The notes under the pieces are model-generated. The model was given only the letters and a program-made list of their open reading frames with translations, searched no databases and had not been told where the DNA came from. The position numbers were made by a program, and so were the translations under genes. A DNA stretch of 63,994 bases, the filler included, from Sluysia triapertura (Eukaryota): assembly GCA_046118255.1 (NCBI GenBank). It is 5 parts of 5 records of this genome, joined end to end, with 100 filler letters (N's around TTAATTAATTAA, not from the genome) between each part and the next. Parts side by side here need not be neighbours in the genome. Positions count along the whole stretch, not along the records: positions 49,566 to 63,994 come from JBJNIA010259846.1; 4 more parts are not named here. One strand, written 5' to 3'. This document shows, piece after piece, positions 49,566 to 63,994 of the stretch (positions are counted from its first letter, which is position 1; every line of letters begins with the position of its first letter).

Positions 49566-51039
49566 TTTTTAGAGTATAAAATAGTATCCAGACATAGTTA
49601 AATTTGATAAAGATTTAATAAAATAAAATTAAAGAGACAACGCATAAGATTTCAAAGACTTAAAAGAAGTCGAGACTAAAGTTTTACATTAACACATTTT
49701 ACATATAAACAACAAAAATAAAAAATTATTACAATACCAAGATATTCATTTTGACTTTGCTATTGAATCTGCACTGATTCGTTTATTAACACTTATCAAT
49801 CATTGAAGATAATCACTGTGCATTACAAACTCAATACGTTAGTAAAATTCTTTAAATATTTAATGTCAGAGCTCGGGAAATCTTACACTATATTACGAGT
49901 TTTGAATAATAGTTATTAATTAAAAATAACATTACATTATAACATATCAGACTAAGAAGAGCATAAACACTAGTAATTAACGGAAACATAGTAAACATAG
50001 CTGCATTTATTTAAAGATTACTGGATTTTCAGAATTCTAATTATTGATACGAAAAATTTAATTAATATCAAAGATTTTCAGGACTTTAATTTTTAATTCA
50101 AATTTTATAGAATTTGTGAAAGAATTTTCAGAATTTGGAGATCTAGTTAATATTATTTGGTAACAGTTAATTTTCAGTTATATACGACGGGTTTCATTGG
50201 TAAGTATAATTTTTTATCTGAATGTAAGATTAATATACTAAACCTTTAAATTAAAGCATATAATTTGATTTTTTATTAAATTAAATTTTATCTAAATTGA
50301 GCTATAAAATTTAAATGTAATTCAAACTGATAAATAAAGTTTGGCTTCGATCATATCATACCGCTTTCGTTTTATTGTTATAGTCTAATTTTACTTATTT
50401 CTTTTTACTATTAAGAGAATTTGGTATAAAGCAATACATAGATCGCATCTGAACACCAGCAAAATAAAATATCAAAATTATTTTCGAAATGTCATGCCTT
50501 TATGCCATTTAATTTTTTTGATTTTCATCAATGAAACATCTTATTTATTTATACTCGAAATAATACATAACATATCAATTAAAGTTAACTTTTAAAAATT
50601 ATATTCATTTTTTATTAAAATATTAATATATTAAAATAACTCTCAAAAGTATAATTGCAGTCATTATTCTCCATTCATGTCCAATGTCTCTTATATACGA
50701 TCTCTCACAACCTTTTGCCAACTATAAAAAATGTGTCCCATCGACTTTACAATAACTTACTACCATTCAAGTTTCTATTCATGAATATCACTACTGCATT
50801 AATACAATTTACTTAAGCATTATGAAGCATTTTTGCTTCTTAATCGTGAATACAATTTAAACGAAAGTGTTATGTTATAACAACCATATATTTTAATTTA
50901 TGGTCGCTGGAAATAACGGATGCATGAAATAAAATGTTTGAATTCTGTTTCGAACTCTGTATTTTTATTTTATTTTTAAATTTATTATTGTAAATAATGT
51001 TTAATATTACTTTGTCTATTCCTAAAAACTTAAGAAGTC

Positions 51040-51561
51040 TTAAACTAACTCAAAATTTCCACTTTTAAAAAGCATTGTAATAACAGTTTCTCCATTGCTA
51101 TTAACAATCCCAACATCAGCACCATGAATAAGAAAAAGCATAACTATTTTCTCCAAATTTTTTTCTAAATTTATCTTAATTATAAATAATAAAATGTGCA
51201 CAGATTTACTAACATTTTTCGCATTTTGAGTGGCAGAATAATTCGAAACACTTAAATGAAGTGGCGTATCTCCAGATTTATCTTGAGAATTAAGCAGATT
51301 CATTTTTTCATTTTTAAAATTGAGAATTACAATTATTTGTTCTAACAGAAGATAAAGCGCAGCCCAATGTAAAATATTGCGACCATCATTATCAACAGAT
51401 AAAATTGAAAAATCAGTTGAAAGAATAATATTTATTAAATGTTTCAGAAATTCTTCTTTACTCTCACTTTTGTCAAAAAATCGATCAAATAAGCTGGTAT
51501 GCCGTAATAAATTTGGAATACATTTACAAGTATTTGAAACCAATTTCGGTATTTTATCAAT
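51040..51561 (-). CDS. Ankyrin-repeat protein, 3' exon(s)
   Basis: Contains DNDGRNILHWAA, QDKSGDTPLHLSV and LFLIHGADVGIVNSNGET. Acceptor at 51563-51562, with a probable in-frame 39-nt intron at 51213-51175. Small upstream exons likely extend to about 52.4 kb but were not resolved. Confidence 0.8.
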   Translation of the reverse strand: MDKIPKLVSNTCKCIPNLLRHTSLFDRFFDKSESKEEFLKHLINIILSTDFSILSVDNDGRNILHWAALYLLLEQIIVILNFKNEKMNLLNSQDKSGDTPLHLSVSNYSATQNAKNVSKSVHILLFIIKINLEKNLEKIVMLFLIHGADVGIVNSNGETVITMLFKSGNFELV

Positions 51562-52977
51562 CTAAAGATTACACAATATTACAAATAATTATAATCCTGA
51601 ACATTATCTTGTAAAAATGAAATTAAATCACTGAAAAACAACAAGCGTTAATTCTAAAGGTATCAATTTGAGTTATCCAAAATTTGAAAACAAATTATTC
51701 ATATTTACTATAAATAATTAATCATTTTCAAATGTTATAATTAAATAACTAATATTTAAACATGACTATTACATTTTAATTATAATTATCAGCGGATTTT
51801 TAATTGTCTAAAACATTTAATTTAAATTTTAATAAAAAATGCATTACTTTATATAATGATGAATAAGAACAATTCAACAATGTATTATTTTTTAACAACA
51901 GTTTTTTGTCTAATAATTAAAAATTACATTAATAAATAATGAACAATTAAAAACATAAAAAATAAAATATTCTTAAAAACAAATAAAAACATTTACGTAA
52001 TTTAAGGTAAGTTCAAAATTTTGAATTAAATTATGCTATGAATAGTTACTTTTTTTCAATCATCGATTTAGAAAATTGTAAACACCAGATTCTTTAATTT
52101 CAACATAAAATTATTTTTGAAACAGTTGTCTGTATTAAGAAATCTGTTTCAATATTTAAAAATACTTACTGCTGACTGAGTTCTAACTTTTACGTCTGGT
52201 TTAACAATCTGCGAATTAAATTTATTGAATAAATATATAATCATAAAAGCATATTGTGCATTATTCACTGTTCAATATTTTTTTTAATATAATTTTTTTG
52301 TCCTGCATAGAATTATAAAATAATTACAGTAAAATTACAATTCCTACCTATACTAAAATTCATTAATTTATTTAATTTAAAATTCGATTGTCCCTGATCT
52401 CAAAACACCACGGACTGAATCATAAACACTATCCTAGAATATCTTGTAAATAAACTTGTAAAGTATATTAATTGTAATTATTTATGAATTGTGTTTTATG
52501 TATTTTATAATTGATTTTAAAAAAATTTTATTATTATTATATAATTAATGAAAAAATGATAAAATTACTAAAATGTATAAAATTATTAAATTATTATAAA
52601 ATTAAATTATAAAATTATTCTTAAATTAGAAGTTAAAAAATTGAAATAAAAACGTTAATATAAAAAATTATAAAATTAAATTTGTTTAAATCAGAAAATT
52701 AATAAATTTTGTTTAAATATATTAACTAATTTAAAAGAACAAAGGTTATTTATTTTTAGAAATTAAAATTATTTTTTAGGTAGCCATTTTGAAAAATAAT
52801 TTACATATAAATAATGATAAATTTTAGTTGAGAGAACACAAGAAAATTAGTTCAAGAAAAATTACTTAGCAGTTCAAACATTCAGTCCATGTTTATCAAG
52901 TAATTAATTTTTCATAAGATTATAACTTCACTTTATATAGGAAGTTTAAAATATTACGTAAATTAATTTCATTTTAT

Positions 52978-53436
52978 ACAACACCTTACACGGGTTGTGT
53001 AACTTATTTTTTAAAATCAAATAGTTCAGCAACTGAGGTTGACTAGAACTTTAAAAAATCATTATTAGTATTATATTTGTTATTTGACGTTATTGTTTGT
53101 AAGCTGTAATATATTTTAAGACATTTTGTTTCATAAGTTGTTAATAAATATTTAACATTATTTAAGAAGTTTTGTCTTATTAATCTAAAATACATTTTTG
53201 CTAAAGCAACACCTTAATACGGGTTGCGTAACATATAAATTCATCAAAAAGTTTTTAAAAGCAACACCTTAATACGGGTTGCGTAATCTCCTAAAATACT
53301 AAACGATTTTCAAAGCAACACCTTACTAAGGGTTGCGTAATGTATACTTATTTTGAAAAAAGCAACACCTTAATACGGGTTGCGTAATTTATAAAATATA
53401 AAAGCTTCATTTGAACAACACCTAAAAAAGGGTTGT
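52978..53436. repeat. Interspaced array of six bulged-hairpin repeats (CRISPR-like layout, no cas genes)
   Basis: Cores start at 52978, 53206, 53261, 53315, 53362 and 53415. Consensus AAAGCAACACCTTAATACGGGTTGCGTAA, with divergent 17-25 nt spacers between the last five copies. Confidence 0.92.
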
Positions 53437-54143
53437 AGAATTAATTAAAAGTTAAGTTAATAGTTAATAGTTTAAGAAAATCTAATAGTGCGTCTCCAAT
53501 AGTGGTATAAAGCGTATATATTAGGCGAACCGACTCCAGATAATTTGCTTAAGTTTAAGAAAAACACTAGCACATTTAACGAATTATTAACTCTATTTTT
53601 ATTCTTTTTCGTTTTGTAACTATAAATATAGTGTCCATTTTTACTTAGTCATTTTAAATAGGCTCGTAAAATTAAATGGCTTTAAAAAACCTAAAAACTA
53701 ATTGTATTATTTACAAACAGTCATTTTAAATAGAATCCTAAAATCATTATTTAATTAAATTTTGAATCGTTTAAAGCTCAAAAAATAAATAAGAACATTT
53801 GCTATATTGAGACAATAGTTATTGCACATAAGATAAGTATAAGTTATTATTGACATTCGTATTCTTAGAATACAAAACCTTGTGTAATTATTGTTCATCT
53901 TCAAATTAATAAAATATATTAATAAAATTAAATTAATAAATTAATAAAATTCTTCACATTAAATTCGTTTTATGATTCTTATATAAGTACTTAGATCCAA
54001 ATTAACCTTTCATATAAGACATAGGGAATATTAAAGGTGATATTATTTTAATCAATCATTTTATTTGTATATTATTCTCTTAAATGAAAGTATTATTAAA
54101 ATAATGTTTGTTATATACATTTATAATTTTGTTTTTAAATAAG

Positions 54144-54165
54144 GTTTCCACAGCAACATAAACAA
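54144..54165 (+). promoter_or_regulatory. RFX X-box with adjacent forkhead (FoxJ1-type) site
   Basis: GTTTCCACAGCAAC (54144-54157) closely fits the RFX X-box palindrome and is immediately followed by ATAAACAA. The X-box ends 46 nt before the TEX55-like ATG. Confidence 0.7.
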
Positions 54166-54203
54166 CGTTTTATCATCTCATGATTAATTTTATTTAAATT
54201 CTC

Positions 54204-54559
54204 ATGTCAAGTTTCAAAAGTGATAGTATATCAGATGATGAAAGTATATATGCTCAAAGATGTGTGGAAAAAGCTTTAAATGATAGCATTCAACAATTAA
54301 TAACAAGTTCATTCAATGATGAAAATCTAAAAACTGTTCATTACGAGTATTTAGAACATCAGGATGTAGTTAAAAATCCATATCAATCAGCACTACAATA
54401 TTTACAAAAATATTCTATAATTCAGTTATTTCAAGTATTTCGTTTATTAAAAAATCATAGTTTTAGAACTTGACTTATGGAATGGTTTTAAATAAACCTG
54501 AAGATCCAATTGATTTTATGATTGATTTTATTGAGAAAGGTTATGAAAATTGTGATTGA
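54204..54559 (+). CDS. TEX55: TEX55/C3orf30-like small protein with C-terminal RIIa-like dimerization/docking domain (107 aa; exons 54204-54434 and 54467-54559)
   Basis: Removing the 32-nt GT-AG intron gives NPYQSALQYLQKYSIIQLFQ|NLTYGMVLNKPEDPIDFMIDFIEK, the D/D-domain pattern Y..K..I.Q.FQ..T..LV..KPEDP..FM. Confidence 0.75.
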
Positions 54560-56564
54560 ATATATAATATATAAACTATTTTGATAATGTGTATGTATTT
54601 TTGACTTTGCACTTTTTTATAGGTAGAAAATCTTACTTAATTAATAAATTTTATAAGGAATATTAATGATCATATTTATAAATTTAATTATAACTTAATG
54701 GAATAATAGTTTTCATAAAACACCGAAGACGTACTTATTTAATAACAAATCATAACAGAATACATTTTATGCAAGTAAGTAATCACCTTAGGTAGTTTGT
54801 ATTTTATTGTGTTTAAGTTATCATATTAAGTAAAAATATTTAACAAAGATTAATTTAATGTATTTCAAATTTAATTTAATTTAATGTATGGACATTCCTT
54901 ACTTGTTATTAAAATTGTTTTATATTTGTATTTTAACGCATTTATCCTAAATGTAAGAATACTTAAAATGATACAAATTATAATCACTAAATATGACTAA
55001 TAACTATTGAATTACATTGAAATTAGCTTAAAGTGGTTCTTTAAACTATAATTTTGTTAAAATCCTAGTAAAAATTTAGAATGCCAAACATTATTGTTCA
55101 AAAACTTGTAATTTTTAGAACGATTAAACTATTTTATTTGATAAAATTTGTACAATTACACAAAATAAAAATTAATTTAATCATGAAGTATCTATATTTT
55201 ATTTTTAAATTAATTTATATTATTCAAAAAATTTATTTTTTATTGAACCTTAAATGTAATTACGAGTAAAAATATAAAACATTTTATATTTTGAGGAAGT
55301 ATTTTGTTTAAATGACCTATTTAGTAAATATTATTATCCAATAAGAATCTGACAAGTGTGTAAACGCCATATTGTTTAGCTTTTCACTGATTCGCTTTAA
55401 TGACGGTTAGTATTGGTTTATATATATTTGACTGCATAGTTTCAATATTTCATTTGTCTTAGCTTATTTTTAAAATGTGATTTTGTTTGTCTGTTATGAT
55501 AAACATAATATTTTAACTACTAATTTTTTAAGAACAGTCAGTTATATTGATTTCCAAAATGTTTTTCTGTTGTTTTACTTAATTATTTAAAATCAATATG
55601 GTTTACGTGGTTCAATGCAAAACTTAGTTTTTACGTCATCGTTATGGAATTTAGTAGGTCATAAATATATTTTTGTGATAGAGTTAGTGTAAATTTTATT
55701 TTTAAATTAATTTTTAGATTTTGTAGCAGAAGATCATTTTTATGTGGAACAAATGACTGACTTAACTATGTATTGTTTCTTGTTTATGAAATAAATGATG
55801 TTTGACTTCAGAAATTTTTTGTCAGCTTCACTATTTAATTATCCATTTTTAATAATCTTAAAATGTATATTGAATCACAAGTGTAAGACATAATTAATAT
55901 GTGAATATTAAAGAAATACGTGGCAAATTTATATGTAATCAGGTGAATACGTGACTGTTCATTATGATATGAGTAAAGCAAGGTTTAACCTTCTGAGTAT
56001 TTTATCACTTATATTGAGATATGTTTTTGTGCCATTGTAATATAAATTGTTTCGGGGTGAAAAATCAACCGAACTCCATGTGTATTAATGTGGCTACTAT
56101 TAATTTATATATGTAGTTTTGTATTACATATTTTAATTAAACGGTTACACAAGTAGAATCATGTTTATAAACGTAAATAAGTATCAGTTCATCTTCAATA
56201 CTAAAAGATACTTAAATACTAGATTTGTCTGATTAAAATGTAACAAGAATAAAATGTTAATAAGAACTTCAGTTTTATTTGTGCTATTTGTATTTCAATT
56301 TTATAATTAGAACTTTAAAGTCACGTAATTATTAAAATGATGCAATAACTTTATTCAACACAAATAAAGTTACGTATAAGCATGAATTAAAATTTATTTT
56401 ATTTAATGAATGTGTATATGGATATCTATTTCTATATACATTTTAAACTAATTGTTATCATCATTTTACTATAAAATTGTCAAAGTTAATTTTATTTTAA
56501 CAGTATATTTTATGTAACGATAAGGTTGGTAAATATTCATATTACTTAGAATCATTTTATTTAG

Positions 56565-56688
56565 ATGTTAGATTACAGTGAAGACACTAGTACTACCAGT
56601 AGTTCTGAGTAATATTGTTATATTTACAATATTTTTTATTAGAGACAGTGAAATAATTCCAAAATCTAGGAATACTAAACATAGAACG
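56565..56688 (+). CDS. CHD1: CHD1 5' micro-exons (56565-56608 and 56643-56688)
   Basis: They read MLDYSEDTSTTSSS-E-DSEIIPKSRNTKHRT across a phase-compatible 34-nt GT-AG intron. The phase-0 donor GTATGT joins the exon at 58044. Confidence 0.7.
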
Positions 56689-57563
56689 GTATGTATATTT
56701 CTATAAATTTATGTAACTATAAATATCTAATGTAGAAAAATTTAGTGTGTAAATAAAAATCAATATTTTTTCTAAATGTTGTAATGAAATCAATTTAAAT
56801 GAAAACATTGTATTTTATCAGTCTGTATTAATCAAGAATTTTGCATTTTATATATTAAAATTAAGTATAATTAAATGTATTTTTTGAAGCCTAATGCAGT
56901 TTATAGTGACAAACCTTTGAATTATCTAGCTATCTTTTAATTTATTAAATTTTTCTGCTTCAGAAATAGTGAGTGATTTAATTTAAGCACTTTTGAGTAC
57001 TTATTTTGCATTAGATATCACAATAAAAATAATGTATTATCATTATAGTAATCCGAACGTAAAAAATTGTATATGCCGTAAAGTAATTAAAATGTTTTCA
57101 CAAATATGCTTGCAATAAGTTTGTATGGATGGATGCTATGATATACTGTTAACGTTTTTTATGTGAACAAATGGTAGAAAGTCGTTCAGAGGACTACATG
57201 AAACTGTTTTGAATTGATGCATGCATATTTTTTGAAGCCTGCATTTCACTTGAATGATACAACTATCTACTTCTTTGGCATCATACTGAAATCATTGATC
57301 TTACGTGGTATATTTCGCAGTAAACCATGTTATAAAAATTTTTGAAAATGTACAATACTTCTGTCAGAGATTCGTGCCTTTTGAAAGAAAAAAACTCCAA
57401 AACTTTTCAAAATTGGTACAGCTAGACATGAGCCTATTTTTGAAATACTAACATTTCGAAAAACAAACTTTTCTTAATTCAAGGTGGATGTGATAGATAT
57501 TCGAAATCACATTTTCTAATTGACAACGTTCTGGATAGTTAAAATTTAGATGCCTTGTAAACT

Positions 57564-57690
57564 ACACTTATCCCTCATTTTAAAAGTTACTTTTTTACAC
57601 GTTTTCGCTTTTAAAAAAGTTTAATTTCAATATTTAATTTTAAATTTTTTTGAACCCTGTTAAAAACTGTAAAACGAGAGATTGAAATTG
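57564..57690. mobile_element. Short Tigger-like MITE in the CHD1 intron
   Basis: Homologous to 47787-47930; ends ccctcatttt / aaaacgagag. Confidence 0.45.
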
Positions 57691-58043
57691 ATTTCGTCAT
57701 AGTTGATTATATAATATCTTGTATTTAATTAATTAGCTTATTATTGTGTCGTCAATTCAGAAAAGTAGCTCTTAACATTAAAGTGGTATTGATTTTTTAT
57801 TAAAATACATTCGACCGCATTTTAAATGTTTTCACATTACATGTATTTATGGATCTAATTTATAATTTGCTTTACAAGCATTGTAACATTAAATTAACCA
57901 AACTTTAAAAACAAAGTGTAATTATTTTCGCGATAAAATAAACATTTGAATTTTTTGTGATTTTTATTTTATTGAGTTCGGTATTATGCAAAGAATTAAA
58001 TTAAAAAATATATTTTATAATTTGTAAAATATAAAATGTTCAG

Positions 58044-61000
58044 CTCTTAGCAGATATTAAAGAAAATCCTGATTTATATGCTACTAGAAGATCAGAAAGA
58101 AATAGAAAAGAACCAACTAGATTAAATATTCAGAATTCACCACTTAAAGGATCACGTTTACGTCGAATATACAGTGGATCATCTTCGCAAGATGAAGAAG
58201 ATGAAGATAGTGATTTTGAATTTACAAAACATAAACGATATCACCAAAGCAAACCAAACAGAGAATTTCGTAAACGAACTCATGTTAGTTATAAGGAAGA
58301 GGATTCTGAAGTTGATTCAGACGAGTCTGGTGAACCAAAAACAAAGCAAAAGAAATTAAACAGTGTATTCACTAATACTGTGATGCGAGATAATCCTCTA
58401 GTAAACAGACCAGTTAGTTTATTTCGTAGAATAGAAACAGATCAGAATGATGATGATAGTAATAATGATGTTACATTGGATGTTAATGTTGATCAAGAAG
58501 AAGGAAACGTTATTGAAGAAGTTATTAGCTTTAGATTGGGTATGCCTGGTAATATAGGTTCGGATACTACTTTTTATAATCAAAAATTAAAGGGTTTAAA
58601 AATCGAAGATGGAACGGAAAAACAATATTTAATTAAATGGCGAGGATGGAGCTATATTCATAGTACTTGGGAAAGTGAAGAAAGTATAAAGCACTATTCA
58701 AATATTGATGGTTTGAAAAAGTTGGAAAAATTTAAAGAAATTCAAAAAGTTAGAGAATATTGGAAGCAGAATGAAGCTACCCCAGAAGATTTAGATGCAG
58801 CACAATTTGAAGAAGAAAGAAACGAGTTTTTACTACAAGAAAAAATGGATTGTGAAAGAATAATTGACTGCTGTCCTAATAAGCAAACAAGTGATACAGA
58901 TTATTTGATTAAATGGAAAACTCTGGATTATCGCTATTCAACTTGGGAGTCTGGAGAAGAAATAGTAAAACTTTTGTATTTTGAAGCTATCAAAGAATTT
59001 GAAGAACGAAATAATAGTTTAAAAATTCCAAATAGAAAGTGTGAAGTATGGACTCGAAGACCTAAATTTATTCCCATTCGTGAACAGCCCGATTATTTGT
59101 CAACTAATCCCAATTTAGTATTACGTGATTATCAGCTAGATGGTATTAATTGGTTAGTAAGGGCATGGACTAGAGGTAATAGTGTAATATTAGCTGATGA
59201 AATGGGTCTTGGAAAAACAATACAGACAATCGGATTCTTGTCTTACTTGTTTAATCAACATAACATGTTTGGACCATTTCTGTTAGTAGTTCCTTTAAGT
59301 ACAATTGGAAGTTGGCAGTTAGAGTTATCAAATTGGGCCCCTTATATGAATGTTATAGTTTATACAGGTGATGCAGTGTCACGTCAAGTTATTAGAGAAT
59401 GTGAGTGGTATTTTAGTAAGAAAAAGATACTAAAATTTCACGTATGTATTACAACATATGAATTGGTTTTAAAAGATAAGGCTTGGCTTAGTCAAATATC
59501 ATGGGCATTCTTAGGGGTAGATGAAGCGCATAGATTAAAAAATGATGAAAGCCAATTATATGCGGCATTAATGTCTTTTAATACTAATACTCGTTTATTA
59601 ATTACAGGTACTCCTGTTCATAATTCACTTCGAGAATTGTGGGCATTATTGCATTTTATTATGCCAGATAAATTTGAAAAATGGAATGATTTTGAAGAGA
59701 AGTATAATATATCAGACGAAAACAATGCAGTTGGTGAAGTTATATCACATTTATATCGCGCATTGGAACCATTTCTATTACGTAGAACCAAGAAAGATGT
59801 TGAAAAGTCATTACCATCTAAAAGTGAACAAATTATTAGAGTACCTATGTGTAAGAAACAGGCTGAATTATATAAATTAATATTAACTAAGAATTTTGAT
59901 GCATTATCTAAAGAAACCAGAGGTCATAAATCAGCATTTTTAAATGTTGTCATGGAACTTAAAAAATGTTGTAATCACGTGCAGCTAGTTAATCCTCTCG
60001 ACGAAGAAATTGATCATTCTATGAAACCAGAAGATCGATTACGGTATTTTATAAAGTCAAGTGGAAAGGTGATGCTATTAGATAAATTATTATTTGAATT
60101 AAGAGAAAATGGTCATAGAGTATTAATTTTTAGTCAAATGGTACGCATGTTAGATATAATATCAGATTATCTGTTGTTGAGGGGTTGGGGATTTCAGCGT
60201 TTAGATGGATCAATAAAAGGTAGTTTAAGAAAGCAAGCAATCGATCATTTTAATGCTGATGGATCAACAGACTTTTGTTTTTTATTATCAACTAGAGCAG
60301 GTGGATTAGGTATAAATTTAGCTACAGCTGATACTGTGATTATTTTTGATAGTGATTGGAATCCTCAAAATGATCTTCAAGCCATGGCCCGTGCTCATCG
60401 AATTGGTCAAACGAAACAAGTTTCTGTATATCGATTTGTTATTAAAAACAGTGTTGAAGAAAAAATTATTGAGTGTGCAAAAAAGAAGATGGTGCTAGAT
60501 CATTTAGTAATTCAACGTATGGATTCAGCACTTAGAAAAAAAACTGATGTTAATAAAAACCAACCTTTTAATAAAGATGAATTAAACGAAATATTAAAAT
60601 TTGGTGCTGCAGATTTATTTAATCAAGATGAATCAATGGATGAAGAACATGACTTAAATATACATGACATTTTACAAAGAGCAGAAACCCGTGATAATGA
60701 TGAAGTTCATAATCCAGCAAATGATTTACTTTCAGCATTTAAAGTTGTCAATATTACTGAAACTAGAGAAGATGAAGATGTTGTGTATATAAGTCATAAA
60801 GGGAAACCGAAATTATGGAGTGAGATAGTTCCTCAAGAATTCAGAGATAAAGTTCGCGAAGAAGAACAACAGAAAACTTTATTGGAATTAAATCTTGGTC
60901 CTCGAAAGCGTAAGAAAGTTAATTCATACCAAGTTGGTCAGCACAATGATGATAGTACTAGTGATGAAAGTAGTGAAGATGAATTTAATCAAGCTATACA

Positions 61001-62588
61001 ATTAAATGAAAAAGAAATTCGAGCAGTTGTTAGAGTCATGAAGAAATTTCCAAGACCTTTAGAACGAGTTGAATCTGTAATGATTGAAGGTGAATTAATT
61101 GAAAGGGATCAGAGAGCTGTATACGATCTTATGAAACGAATTATTGAAGGATGTAATACAGTTTTAAATGAATGTGAAAGTGACGAAAAGAAATCTAAAG
61201 CAACATTGACAATAGGTAAGATTAATATTCCAGCCAAGCAATTTTTGCAATCGTTAGATTATTTAGATGTATTACACACAGTATTCCCTGCTACAAAATC
61301 AGAGCGACTGTTGTATAAACTTCCTTTTGAAACAAAATTTGCTAGTTGGTCTTGTGATTGGGAAACTGCGGATGATGCTAAATTATTAGTTGGTGTTTAT
61401 GAAAAAGGAATGGACAATTGGGAAGCAATTAAAATGGATCCGGATTTTAAATTGACTTCAAAAATATTACCCAATTCAAGTACAGAAAGACCACAATCAA
61501 GTCATTTAAAAACTCGTGTTGAATATTTGTTAAAAAAGTTACGTGATACTTTAAAATCTGAATTACAATCAAGCAATAGAACAACTGTTAACAAGAATTT
61601 AAAGTCTAATAAAAATTTGAAAAAAAATAAAACTTACGTCAAGCCTCCTAAATCAGCTGAATTTGTTGAAGAAAGTGATAGTAGTAAAACTTCAACTAGA
61701 AATTTTAAAAAGAACAGTAAAGTATCAAAATCTAAACAGGACAAATCTAAAGACATGCAAAATCGCCCAGAAAAAGATTTAGAAAATGATGAAGTACAGT
61801 TTTACGATATGCGTGGTCCGTTGTTTGATAAAGTACGTTATTTTATAAATTATTTAGAAACTTATTTAGTGCACTAAAAAAATGAAACCTCTTAAACGGG
61901 AGTTAAAGTATTTAGAAGATCTTCAAAATAAACATCATAATAAATCCATGAGTATCAAAACTGAAGATGAAGCTCTTGGTGAATGTTTATTAGCTATTGG
62001 CAATCATATTCGTAGTATTATAAATGAGTATAAAGAAGATGAAAAACGTCGGTGGAGAAAGTAAGATTTTAATAAAAAACTTAATTTTTTTAGCTATTTA
62101 TGGATTTTTGTGAATTTTTTTTTTGATGTGTATTCAAAAGAAGAACTGCATAGAATATACAAAAAAAGACTAACCGAATTTAAACTTCGTAAAAAAAATG
62201 AAAAAAAATCAAATCATAATTCAAGTATTCCAAATTCAGAACATAAATCACATGAAAAACTAAAATGTAATTTTGAGGCTAAGTCATACCAAGAATATCG
62301 AGACCGAATGAAAAATTTTACTGGTGAAAGTACCAAAAATCGAGATTTTATAAAGTAATGTTTTATTTTATTTAAAGATTATTTAGGAATTATCAAAAAC
62401 CTTATTATCGATCAAATGATCAAAAATCTCAATCTCACAATAAAACAACGAAATTAGAATCTGAAAATTATAAAAGATCTTATGGTACATATACAAAGAG
62501 TATAAATAATCATTTTCACAAAAATATTCCAAAATCAGATTCGCATAACAGTAGAGATCCACGTCTTTCCAAACCAAATGTGAACTAA
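58044..62588 (+). CDS. CHD1: Chromodomain-helicase-DNA-binding protein 1 (exons 58044-61832, 61870-62060, 62094-62354, 62387-62588)
   Basis: N-terminal ENPDLY..RRS.R motif, tandem chromodomains (YLIKWRGWSYIHSTWE, YLIKW..LDYRYSTWE), SNF2 ATPase (ILADEMGLGKT, DEAH, STRAGGLGINL, QAMARAHRIGQ), SANT/SLIDE region and C-terminal KCTKKMKP...WRNYLWIFV domain. Introns of 37, 33 and 32 nt are all GT-AG and phase-consistent; stop TAA at 62586-62588. Confidence 0.95.
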
Positions 62589-63994
62589 ATATTTGCCTTA
62601 ATTCCTATTGCATTTTATATATAATTGTAAATGTGTTTTATATTCGTTGATATTTCTGTATAGATTTGAAGATTTATAACAAAAGACTCATTCTTTTTTT
62701 AATTTAACATGATAATTTTAAAAAATAAATGTATAAATTGAATGTCAATTATAATAAATAACTGGCGATTACAATAACATACTGGAGTAATTTATAGTAG
62801 AGTCCGGTAATCACAGTGGCTTGGTAGAAAACAATCTACTTTAGTATTGAATAAATTTTTGTAATAAGTATTTTGATTAAGCGAACCACACTAATTCTAG
62901 TGAAATTTTTCATTGATTTTTATATAATGTCATAAATTACTTCAAATTAATTAAATTCATTCATATTTAAAACTAACTGTTTAACCAACCTTAATATGAA
63001 CATTTAACTTAGGGAATTTTAATAAAGTTACGTAGCTTAAGTTTATATTGATTTTATATTTCAGAATTCAATAAACAGCTTTTGAATTTTGCTACTTAAG
63101 GATATGTTAATTCACTTAAGGCACTTACATAACTAACCATGATTTTTGATTATTTGGCTACACTTGATAATTGTATCAGGAAGTTATTTTAATAAAGATT
63201 TTAATGAGAATATATCAATGTGAACATTTTGGAGTATATTTATTTCTATGTAAAATAAACCTTAGGTGAGTTCGTCTCTTGAAACTCTTATCCTAGCGGA
63301 AGGTATCCTATAGATTTTCAATCAAAATTAATATAGAAAATCTTAACTCTAAGGATAGTGATTAATTCTCGGCTGAAATATCAATATTTACTTGTTTCAA
63401 ATGAGTCGCATTATGTTTAACATTGTGAAACTTAGTATAATCACATGTTTAGTAGTTCATTTCTTAAATTCTCAGGGTTGTCATCACATCCACATTTGAG
63501 GATAATTAATAAATAAAAAAATATCAATCTATTATCTATTCATTAAAGTGAGTAGGTAATAGATCAATTTTTAAATAAAATATTTTAAAAATTTTACTTA
63601 TAAAAGTAGGAAATTAAAATTAACAAATTCTTTAAACAAAATTGGAAGTGGTTAAAAATAATTGGTCGAAAACTACTGCTTAAGTAGGACTTGATTCATT
63701 AAACTTGTTAACATTTAACGTAATTCATCAAACCATTTTGGTTCTTAGTAATAAAGCAACATTATTTACATCGACTGTTCTTTATCAACTCAGATTCATT
63801 GTTACCGCACTATGTTCAAGAACTACATACATTAATCAATTATGTAGTATTTAGAACTAGAATTAAGAAAAAATTAAATATAAAATTAGGTGACAATTAA
63901 ATAAACTTGTAAATAAAGGAATAACGGTAATTAAATCAAATGGAAAATGCAGAACCTTTTCTTAAAATAATTCATTAATAATATATAATGTATA

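Follow-up and report, generated by a model that had tools for sequence, protein, structure and literature searches.

The window analysed here is a stretch of 63,994 nucleotides, filler included, from the genome of Sluysia triapertura (GCA_046118255.1), and the locus described below lies in its last piece of 14.4 kb (49566-63994), of which positions 53900-53936 were masked in scripted analyses. An ORF at 58380-61877 in this piece encodes CHD1, with its best matches among the trematode and cestode CHD1 proteins (49-54% identity). The gene apparently starts at about 56566, and two mini-exons precede a large exon that begins near 58045. Part of a CHD1 intron (57066-57565) is GC-richer (0.31) and contains neither an ORF nor an Rfam match. 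From the CHD1 matches, which include no close relative, the host is probably a flatworm-like animal with a very AT-rich genome (~22% GC, 78% AT).

The feature of interest is an array of short repeated units located, as the initial annotation had stated, between two divergently oriented genes (Table 1). To its left is an ankyrin-repeat gene on the minus strand, and to its right a small Tex55-like gene on the plus strand, whose two exons are separated by a 32-nt intron (54435-54466). These exons were searched separately. Exon 1 gave a weak Pfam match to Tex55 (E = 7.7e-4, below the cut-off), and the Dpy-30/RIIa motif at the exon junction was read by eye. The ORF of exon 1 is not on record; it has no word-sharing homologue, and an exhaustive search returned repeat-protein artefacts only. 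No nuclease ORFs were found, in agreement with the earlier statement that no cas or nuclease gene lies nearby.

Synteny with TEX55 and CHD1 in related species had been proposed as a check, and its outcome was negative. Neither the motif nor a Tex55-like neighbour is present at the CHD1 loci of Hymenolepis, Macrostomum, Schistosoma turkestanicum, and Echinococcus, and the array is therefore not deeply conserved. Compared with these four loci, the genome is unusually AT-rich for a flatworm (~22% GC here versus 36-48% there). Nor is the order of genes in this region conserved.

A pattern scan of the whole 14.4-kb piece with CAACACC-N6/7-GGGTTG returned six matches, at 52979, 53207, 53262, 53316, 53363, and 53416, all of them on the plus strand and confined to 52979-53435. 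The same pattern was matched in none of 100 shuffled sequences, and the six-unit array is real and non-random. Its description as six units of the form RCAAC-A-CC-(6-7 nt)-GG-GTTGY was confirmed, with the R of each unit at 52978, 53206, 53261, 53315, 53362, and 53415. The same is true of the closing pair, with G:C closing the four central units and A:T both outer ones, and of the loops TTAATAC (three units), TTACTAA, TTACAC, and TAAAAAA. The units are numbered u0 to u5 in Table 1. Five of them stand in tandem with the start-to-start spacing reported previously (55, 54, 47, and 53 nt), and TRF detects a 54-bp period in the array; u0 is an isolated unit 228 nt upstream of the tandem five. The short palindrome AGCAAC-TGA-GGTTGA that follows u0 could be a unit that has decayed and lost an internal segment. 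Searches with a unit HMM (nhmmer) revealed no extra or decayed units in the 14.4-kb piece and none between u0 and u1, so that remnants with a 54-nt period, seen by eye in that interval, are unsupported.

Table 1. Features of the array and its flanks (positions in the window)
Feature	Position	Strand	Details
Ankyrin-repeat coding ORF, divergently oriented upstream gene	51040-51543	-	ORF and domain searches; 5' end of the gene not located
u0, distal isolated copy	52978-52998	+	ACAAC-A-CC-TTACAC-GG-GTTGT; 6-nt loop; dyad with flanks 9 + 2 bp, including one T.G; -10.8 kcal/mol as RNA
Possible decayed unit, AGCAAC-TGA-GGTTGA	53028-53045	+	short palindrome 50 nt past u0; below significance in nhmmer
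u1	53203-53231	+	29-nt core AAAGCAACACCTTAATACGGGTTGCGTAA; hairpin 53206-53227
u2	53258-53286	+	core as in u1; hairpin 53261-53282; T-run and AGCAAC (53251-53265) match degenerate X-box consensus
u3	53312-53340	+	loop variant TTACTAA, giving an upper stem of 4 bp; hairpin 53315-53336
u4	53359-53387	+	core as in u1 and u2; hairpin 53362-53383
u5, most diverged unit	53415-53436	+	ACAAC...GTTGT; loop TAAAAAA; 3' flank now AGAA
GC-richer block, candidate core promoter	53496-53523	+	CCAAT 53496-53500; TATAAAG 53506-53512; TATATATTA 53515-53523; 60-70 nt past the last unit
X-box-like site GTTTCCACAGCAAC	54144-54157	+	46 nt before the ATG of the Tex55/Dpy-30-like gene
Small two-exon gene, Tex55/Dpy-30-motif-like	54204-54559	+	exon 1 54204-54434; exon 2 54467-54556 plus stop

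Alignment of the units shows 13 stem letters that are invariant in all six copies, nine of them G or C. Outside the stem, the T that opens the loop, one A within the loop, and two A's on the 3' side are likewise invariant. The 29-nt core AAAGCAACACCTTAATACGGGTTGCGTAA is identical in u1, u2, and u4, and the 22-nt hairpin of u3 differs at two loop positions. The initial annotation held that only the hairpin had been conserved. This is too narrow, as the units also keep a 5' AAA, a 3' GTAAYnTAT, and a run of T's located 5-9 nt upstream; in gapless register, the conserved unit is a sequence of 29-34 nt, which is more than the stem alone. Despite the AT bias, the diverged outer units retain the full set of 13 core letters with its nine G/C positions.

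The spacers are low-complexity A/T sequences of 17-26 nt, and a weak similarity among them had been claimed. Pairwise global alignments did not support this claim, since their summed score was 26 compared to 28.2 +/- 3.8 in shuffled sequence (p = 0.75). As the spacers are no more alike than shuffles, the core must be either constrained or recently copied, and the data support the conclusion that something held the core constant while the spacers were randomised. One option is an old tandem duplication that has become saturated everywhere but in the core, which would mean strong constraint. The other is copying of the core alone. Old tandem duplication agrees better with the regular spacing and the uniform orientation, and a unit of ~54 bp was probably duplicated in tandem to give the array.

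Each unit folds into the bulged hairpin that had been proposed, with a stem of 5 + 2 bp and a bulged A (-7.6 to -10.8 kcal/mol as RNA, z -2.5 to -3.6). As DNA, the units fold at -3.7 to -6.7 kcal/mol, and two of the four DNA hairpins tested were unremarkable compared to shuffles. The dyad symmetry is real at roughly the 1-3% level and better than in shuffled sequence. By contrast, the description of the stem as covarying applies to a single pair (GC in four units, AU in two). The other six of the seven pairs are constant, a score as good is reached by 26 of 500 column shuffles, and multiple independent compensatory changes were not found among the six units. Replacing the G:C closing pair by A:T takes two GC-to-AT transitions, and a genome of ~22% GC would be expected to decay in this direction. 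Because the two A:T units, u0 and u5, have a similar 5' flank, the double change may represent a single inherited event.

Although few events are involved, every change in or beside the stem maintains or extends pairing. The flanks of u0 add four pairs, one of which is a T.G that counts only in single-stranded form, and one to two pairs are gained through the variant loops of u3 and u5. The 251-nt array folds better than shuffles on the plus strand (z -4.0) and on the minus strand (z -4.2), and pairing between units is possible in the array fold. Any array of palindromes must fold on both strands, and thus no strand is favoured. Selection on structure, as suggested initially, is consistent with the constant core and the dyad symmetry; the six units do not establish pairing itself as the selected trait, given that stem letters are invariant, loop and flank letters are conserved, and both strands fold equally. 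No Rfam family was matched at E <= 1 (cmscan, 49566-63994, both strands), and ARAGORN found no tRNA or tmRNA genes.

The term "CRISPR-like", under which the array had been introduced, is an overstatement, as the resemblance is architectural only. CRISPR arrays are built of identical palindromic repeats and unrelated spacers of similar length, and here three of six cores are identical and the spacers are unrelated, but the repeats are of 29 nt with low-complexity A/T spacers of only 17-26 nt, there are five to six units, and the outer repeats are diverged. A CRISPR array proper was rejected on the basis of a eukaryotic nuclear locus with spliced flanking genes, in which cas genes, nuclease ORFs, and a leader are all missing.

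The array forms the GC peak of the intergenic interval (0.30-0.34 versus 0.06-0.22). The GC-richer block that follows it, with CCAAT, TATAAAG, and TATATATTA, is at best a weak candidate for a core promoter; such words are common by chance in DNA of 78% AT. A small RNA gene behind the TATA-like block was considered and rejected, as the block shows no RNA structure signal. The bZIP-like TTGCGTAA reported for the four central units is indeed present. The decamer of C/EBP-type bZIP proteins is RTTGCGYAAY, and u1-u4 carry GTTGCGTAAY (GTTGCGTAAC/T), a predicted C/EBP-PAR type site according to this consensus. The same position reads GTTGTGTAAC in u0 and has degenerated in u5. A perfect palindrome, the PAR-bZIP-type octamer TTACGTAA, occurs at 52954-52961, 24 nt before u0, with a second copy at 51993. 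A literature search for the octamer strings returned primers and unrelated text only.

An RFX-like half site, AGCAAC, had been assigned to each unit; it is present in the four central units and absent from u0 and u5. AGCAAC is the right half of the X-box, which has the consensus GYTNYY N1-3 RRNRAC (PMC2375033), and in u2 and u3 the T-run completes a weak match to the most degenerate form of this consensus. Nevertheless, the array units were rejected as RFX X-boxes. In their conserved dyad GCAAC...GTTGC the halves are everted across a gap of 11-13 nt, unlike the inverted halves and 1-3-nt spacer of the X-box, and the most conserved letters of the unit (CACC, GGG, GTAA) lie outside the X-box. 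A better X-box-like site, GTTTCCACAGCAAC, is located at -46 of the adjacent gene. It fits the definition GYTNYY N1-3 RRNRAC and is the sole match to GTTNCCNNRGYAAC in the window, with 0 matches in shuffles. Its position suggests that the downstream gene may be an RFX-regulated cilia or sperm gene.

Under the reading that we tentatively favour, with a probability of roughly 45%, the array would be a homotypic cluster of sites at which proteins bind double-stranded DNA, serving as an enhancer or promoter module. As in homotypic clusters, several copies of one motif lie in intergenic DNA and are conserved above background. A clustered DNA-binding site had been mentioned previously as an alternative, and it fits the context better than an RNA structure does, in view of the intergenic position, the GC peak, the CCAAT/TATA-like block, the RTTGCGYAAY decamer, and the X-box-like site downstream. 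It is also favoured by the long run of specific letters that are conserved, loop and flank included, and by the fact that no strand is distinguished. The units, their invariance next to randomised spacers, their position, and their motif content can be read directly from the locus; that a protein binds, which factor it is, and which gene it acts on are what we infer.

Repeated promoter or enhancer modules are represented by the SV40 72-bp repeats and the array of Su(Hw) sites in gypsy. Tandem promoter repeats that each hold conserved short motifs are a known arrangement, which further favours binding sites; G564 of bean, for instance, has five 150-bp upstream repeats of this type (PMC4441743). 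The present array shares with such modules the same-orientation copies of a short conserved core, the variable upstream DNA, and an intergenic position near a gene start. It differs in that its core is an imperfect palindrome of 29-34 bp, which is longer than typical single sites.

If the array is a cluster of binding sites, each 29-34-bp core would recruit a sequence-specific factor. It may bind as a dimer to the dyad GCAAC(A)CC / GGGTTGC. Alternatively, the site could be composite, with GTTGCGTAAY bound by a bZIP-type protein and AGCAACACCT by another one. An array of five to six copies would permit multivalent, cooperative occupancy, which would drive or insulate the transcription of a neighbouring gene. 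The likeliest target would be the Tex55/Dpy-30-like gene, the ATG of which is 770 nt downstream. Several points speak against binding sites. The factor motifs are matches to consensus sequences, TATA-like words often turn up by chance at this AT content, and the units are not canonical X-boxes. In addition, the spacer of u0 is 6 nt and not 7, which a rigid dimer would tolerate poorly, and the pairing-friendly changes at the stem are better predicted by structural constraint than by independent half-sites.

The same observations must be weighed under other explanations. The array may be selfish or neutral DNA, such as a small mobile palindromic element, a minisatellite, or hairpin repeats in terminal or subterminal position of a Helitron/Helentron- or hAT-type transposon, in which identical cores would reflect recent copying or template-switch repair and have no host function. 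We regard this as a serious though rather unlikely explanation. Template switching can produce "compensatory" palindrome changes in one step, and TE-derived hairpin arrays are known from other invertebrates. That three cores are 100% identical and that the spacers have no detectable shared ancestry, as if the core alone had been copied, would also be expected. However, the regular 47-55-nt spacing and uniform orientation point to tandem duplication and not to separate insertions, and the diverged outer units keep their core letters against the AT bias. Within the 14.4-kb piece there are no more copies, no inverted partner, LTR-like repeat, or TIR of the array (self-BLAST), and no transposase, RT, or other TE ORFs. 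Another proposal is that the hairpins function in single-stranded or cruciform form at the DNA level, for instance to signal replication or recombination to an HUH-type nuclease, as in rolling-circle origins. With its extrahelical base and a loop that is rich in A/T and ends in TAC, the imperfect palindrome loosely recalls nick-site hairpins, and the free energies of the DNA folds given above are compatible with it. Yet the loop sequence varies between units, leaving no constant nick site, the DNA hairpins are weak and in half of those tested unremarkable, and a Rep or helicase gene was not found nearby. Scans of viral contigs gave no match either: the 22-letter unit pattern was matched in neither metagenome nor viral contigs, and a 17-letter version gave 82 single matches and no arrays in public contig collections, which by our own estimate is about the chance number. 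A signal of this kind is very improbable.

It is unlikely that the array is transcribed and works as RNA, in the form of repeated bulged-hairpin modules with A/U-rich linkers. Such an RNA could be a multivalent platform for RNA-binding proteins, as the Xist A-repeat is, or a precursor cut into RNAs of ~50 nt. The folding of the single units and of the 251-nt array against shuffles agrees with this, as does the tolerance of a loop of 6 or 7 nt and the T-run ahead of each core. The changes next to the stem, all of which keep or lengthen pairing, include one U.G that is possible on the plus strand only. The Xist A-repeat comprises 7.5-8.5 copies of a 26-mer with U-rich linkers between them (PMC5742192), and the locus described here parallels it in copy number (5-8 copies across the two), in core length (~26-29 nt), in variable AT/U-rich linkers, in hairpin-forming cores, and in possible inter-unit pairing. 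There is no sequence similarity between the two, the host is an invertebrate, and the hairpin has a 5 + 2 bp stem, a bulged A, and a 7-nt loop in place of an AUCG tetraloop. Against an RNA role, the stems are short, the one covarying pair may be a single event along the mutational bias, the minus strand folds equally well, Rfam contains no matching family, and loop and flank letters are conserved in the manner of a sequence motif. The more specific proposal, in which an unannotated non-coding RNA of a flatworm would have the array as its functional core and five to six bulged-A hairpins would recruit several copies of an RNA-binding protein, either an independently evolved analogue of the Xist A-repeat or the precursor of a new class of ~50-nt small RNAs, is distinctly doubtful. 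If an RNA role were true, the array would represent a new repeat-module non-coding RNA.

If instead the cluster of binding sites is the correct reading, the locus would provide a clean natural example of a tandem-duplicated regulatory module in a poorly studied, very AT-rich, flatworm-like genome. The 29-mer could then be used as a probe for its factor and for co-regulated genes. Given the Tex55/Dpy-30-like neighbour and the X-box-like site, the latter may be cilia or sperm genes.

Further repeats and compositional features occur on either side of the array. Between the array and the downstream gene there is a 26-nt direct repeat on the plus strand, the two copies of which (53647-53672 and 53719-53744) are 88% identical and 72 nt apart. 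Just upstream of the array region, 52450-52700 has a GC content of 6-9% and consists of overlapping tandem repeats of 8-24 nt. A stretch at 52340-52420 (minus strand) is GC-richer, with a strongly negative GC skew on the plus strand and without an ORF, and may belong to the ankyrin gene, either as its promoter or as a 5' exon that is non-coding.
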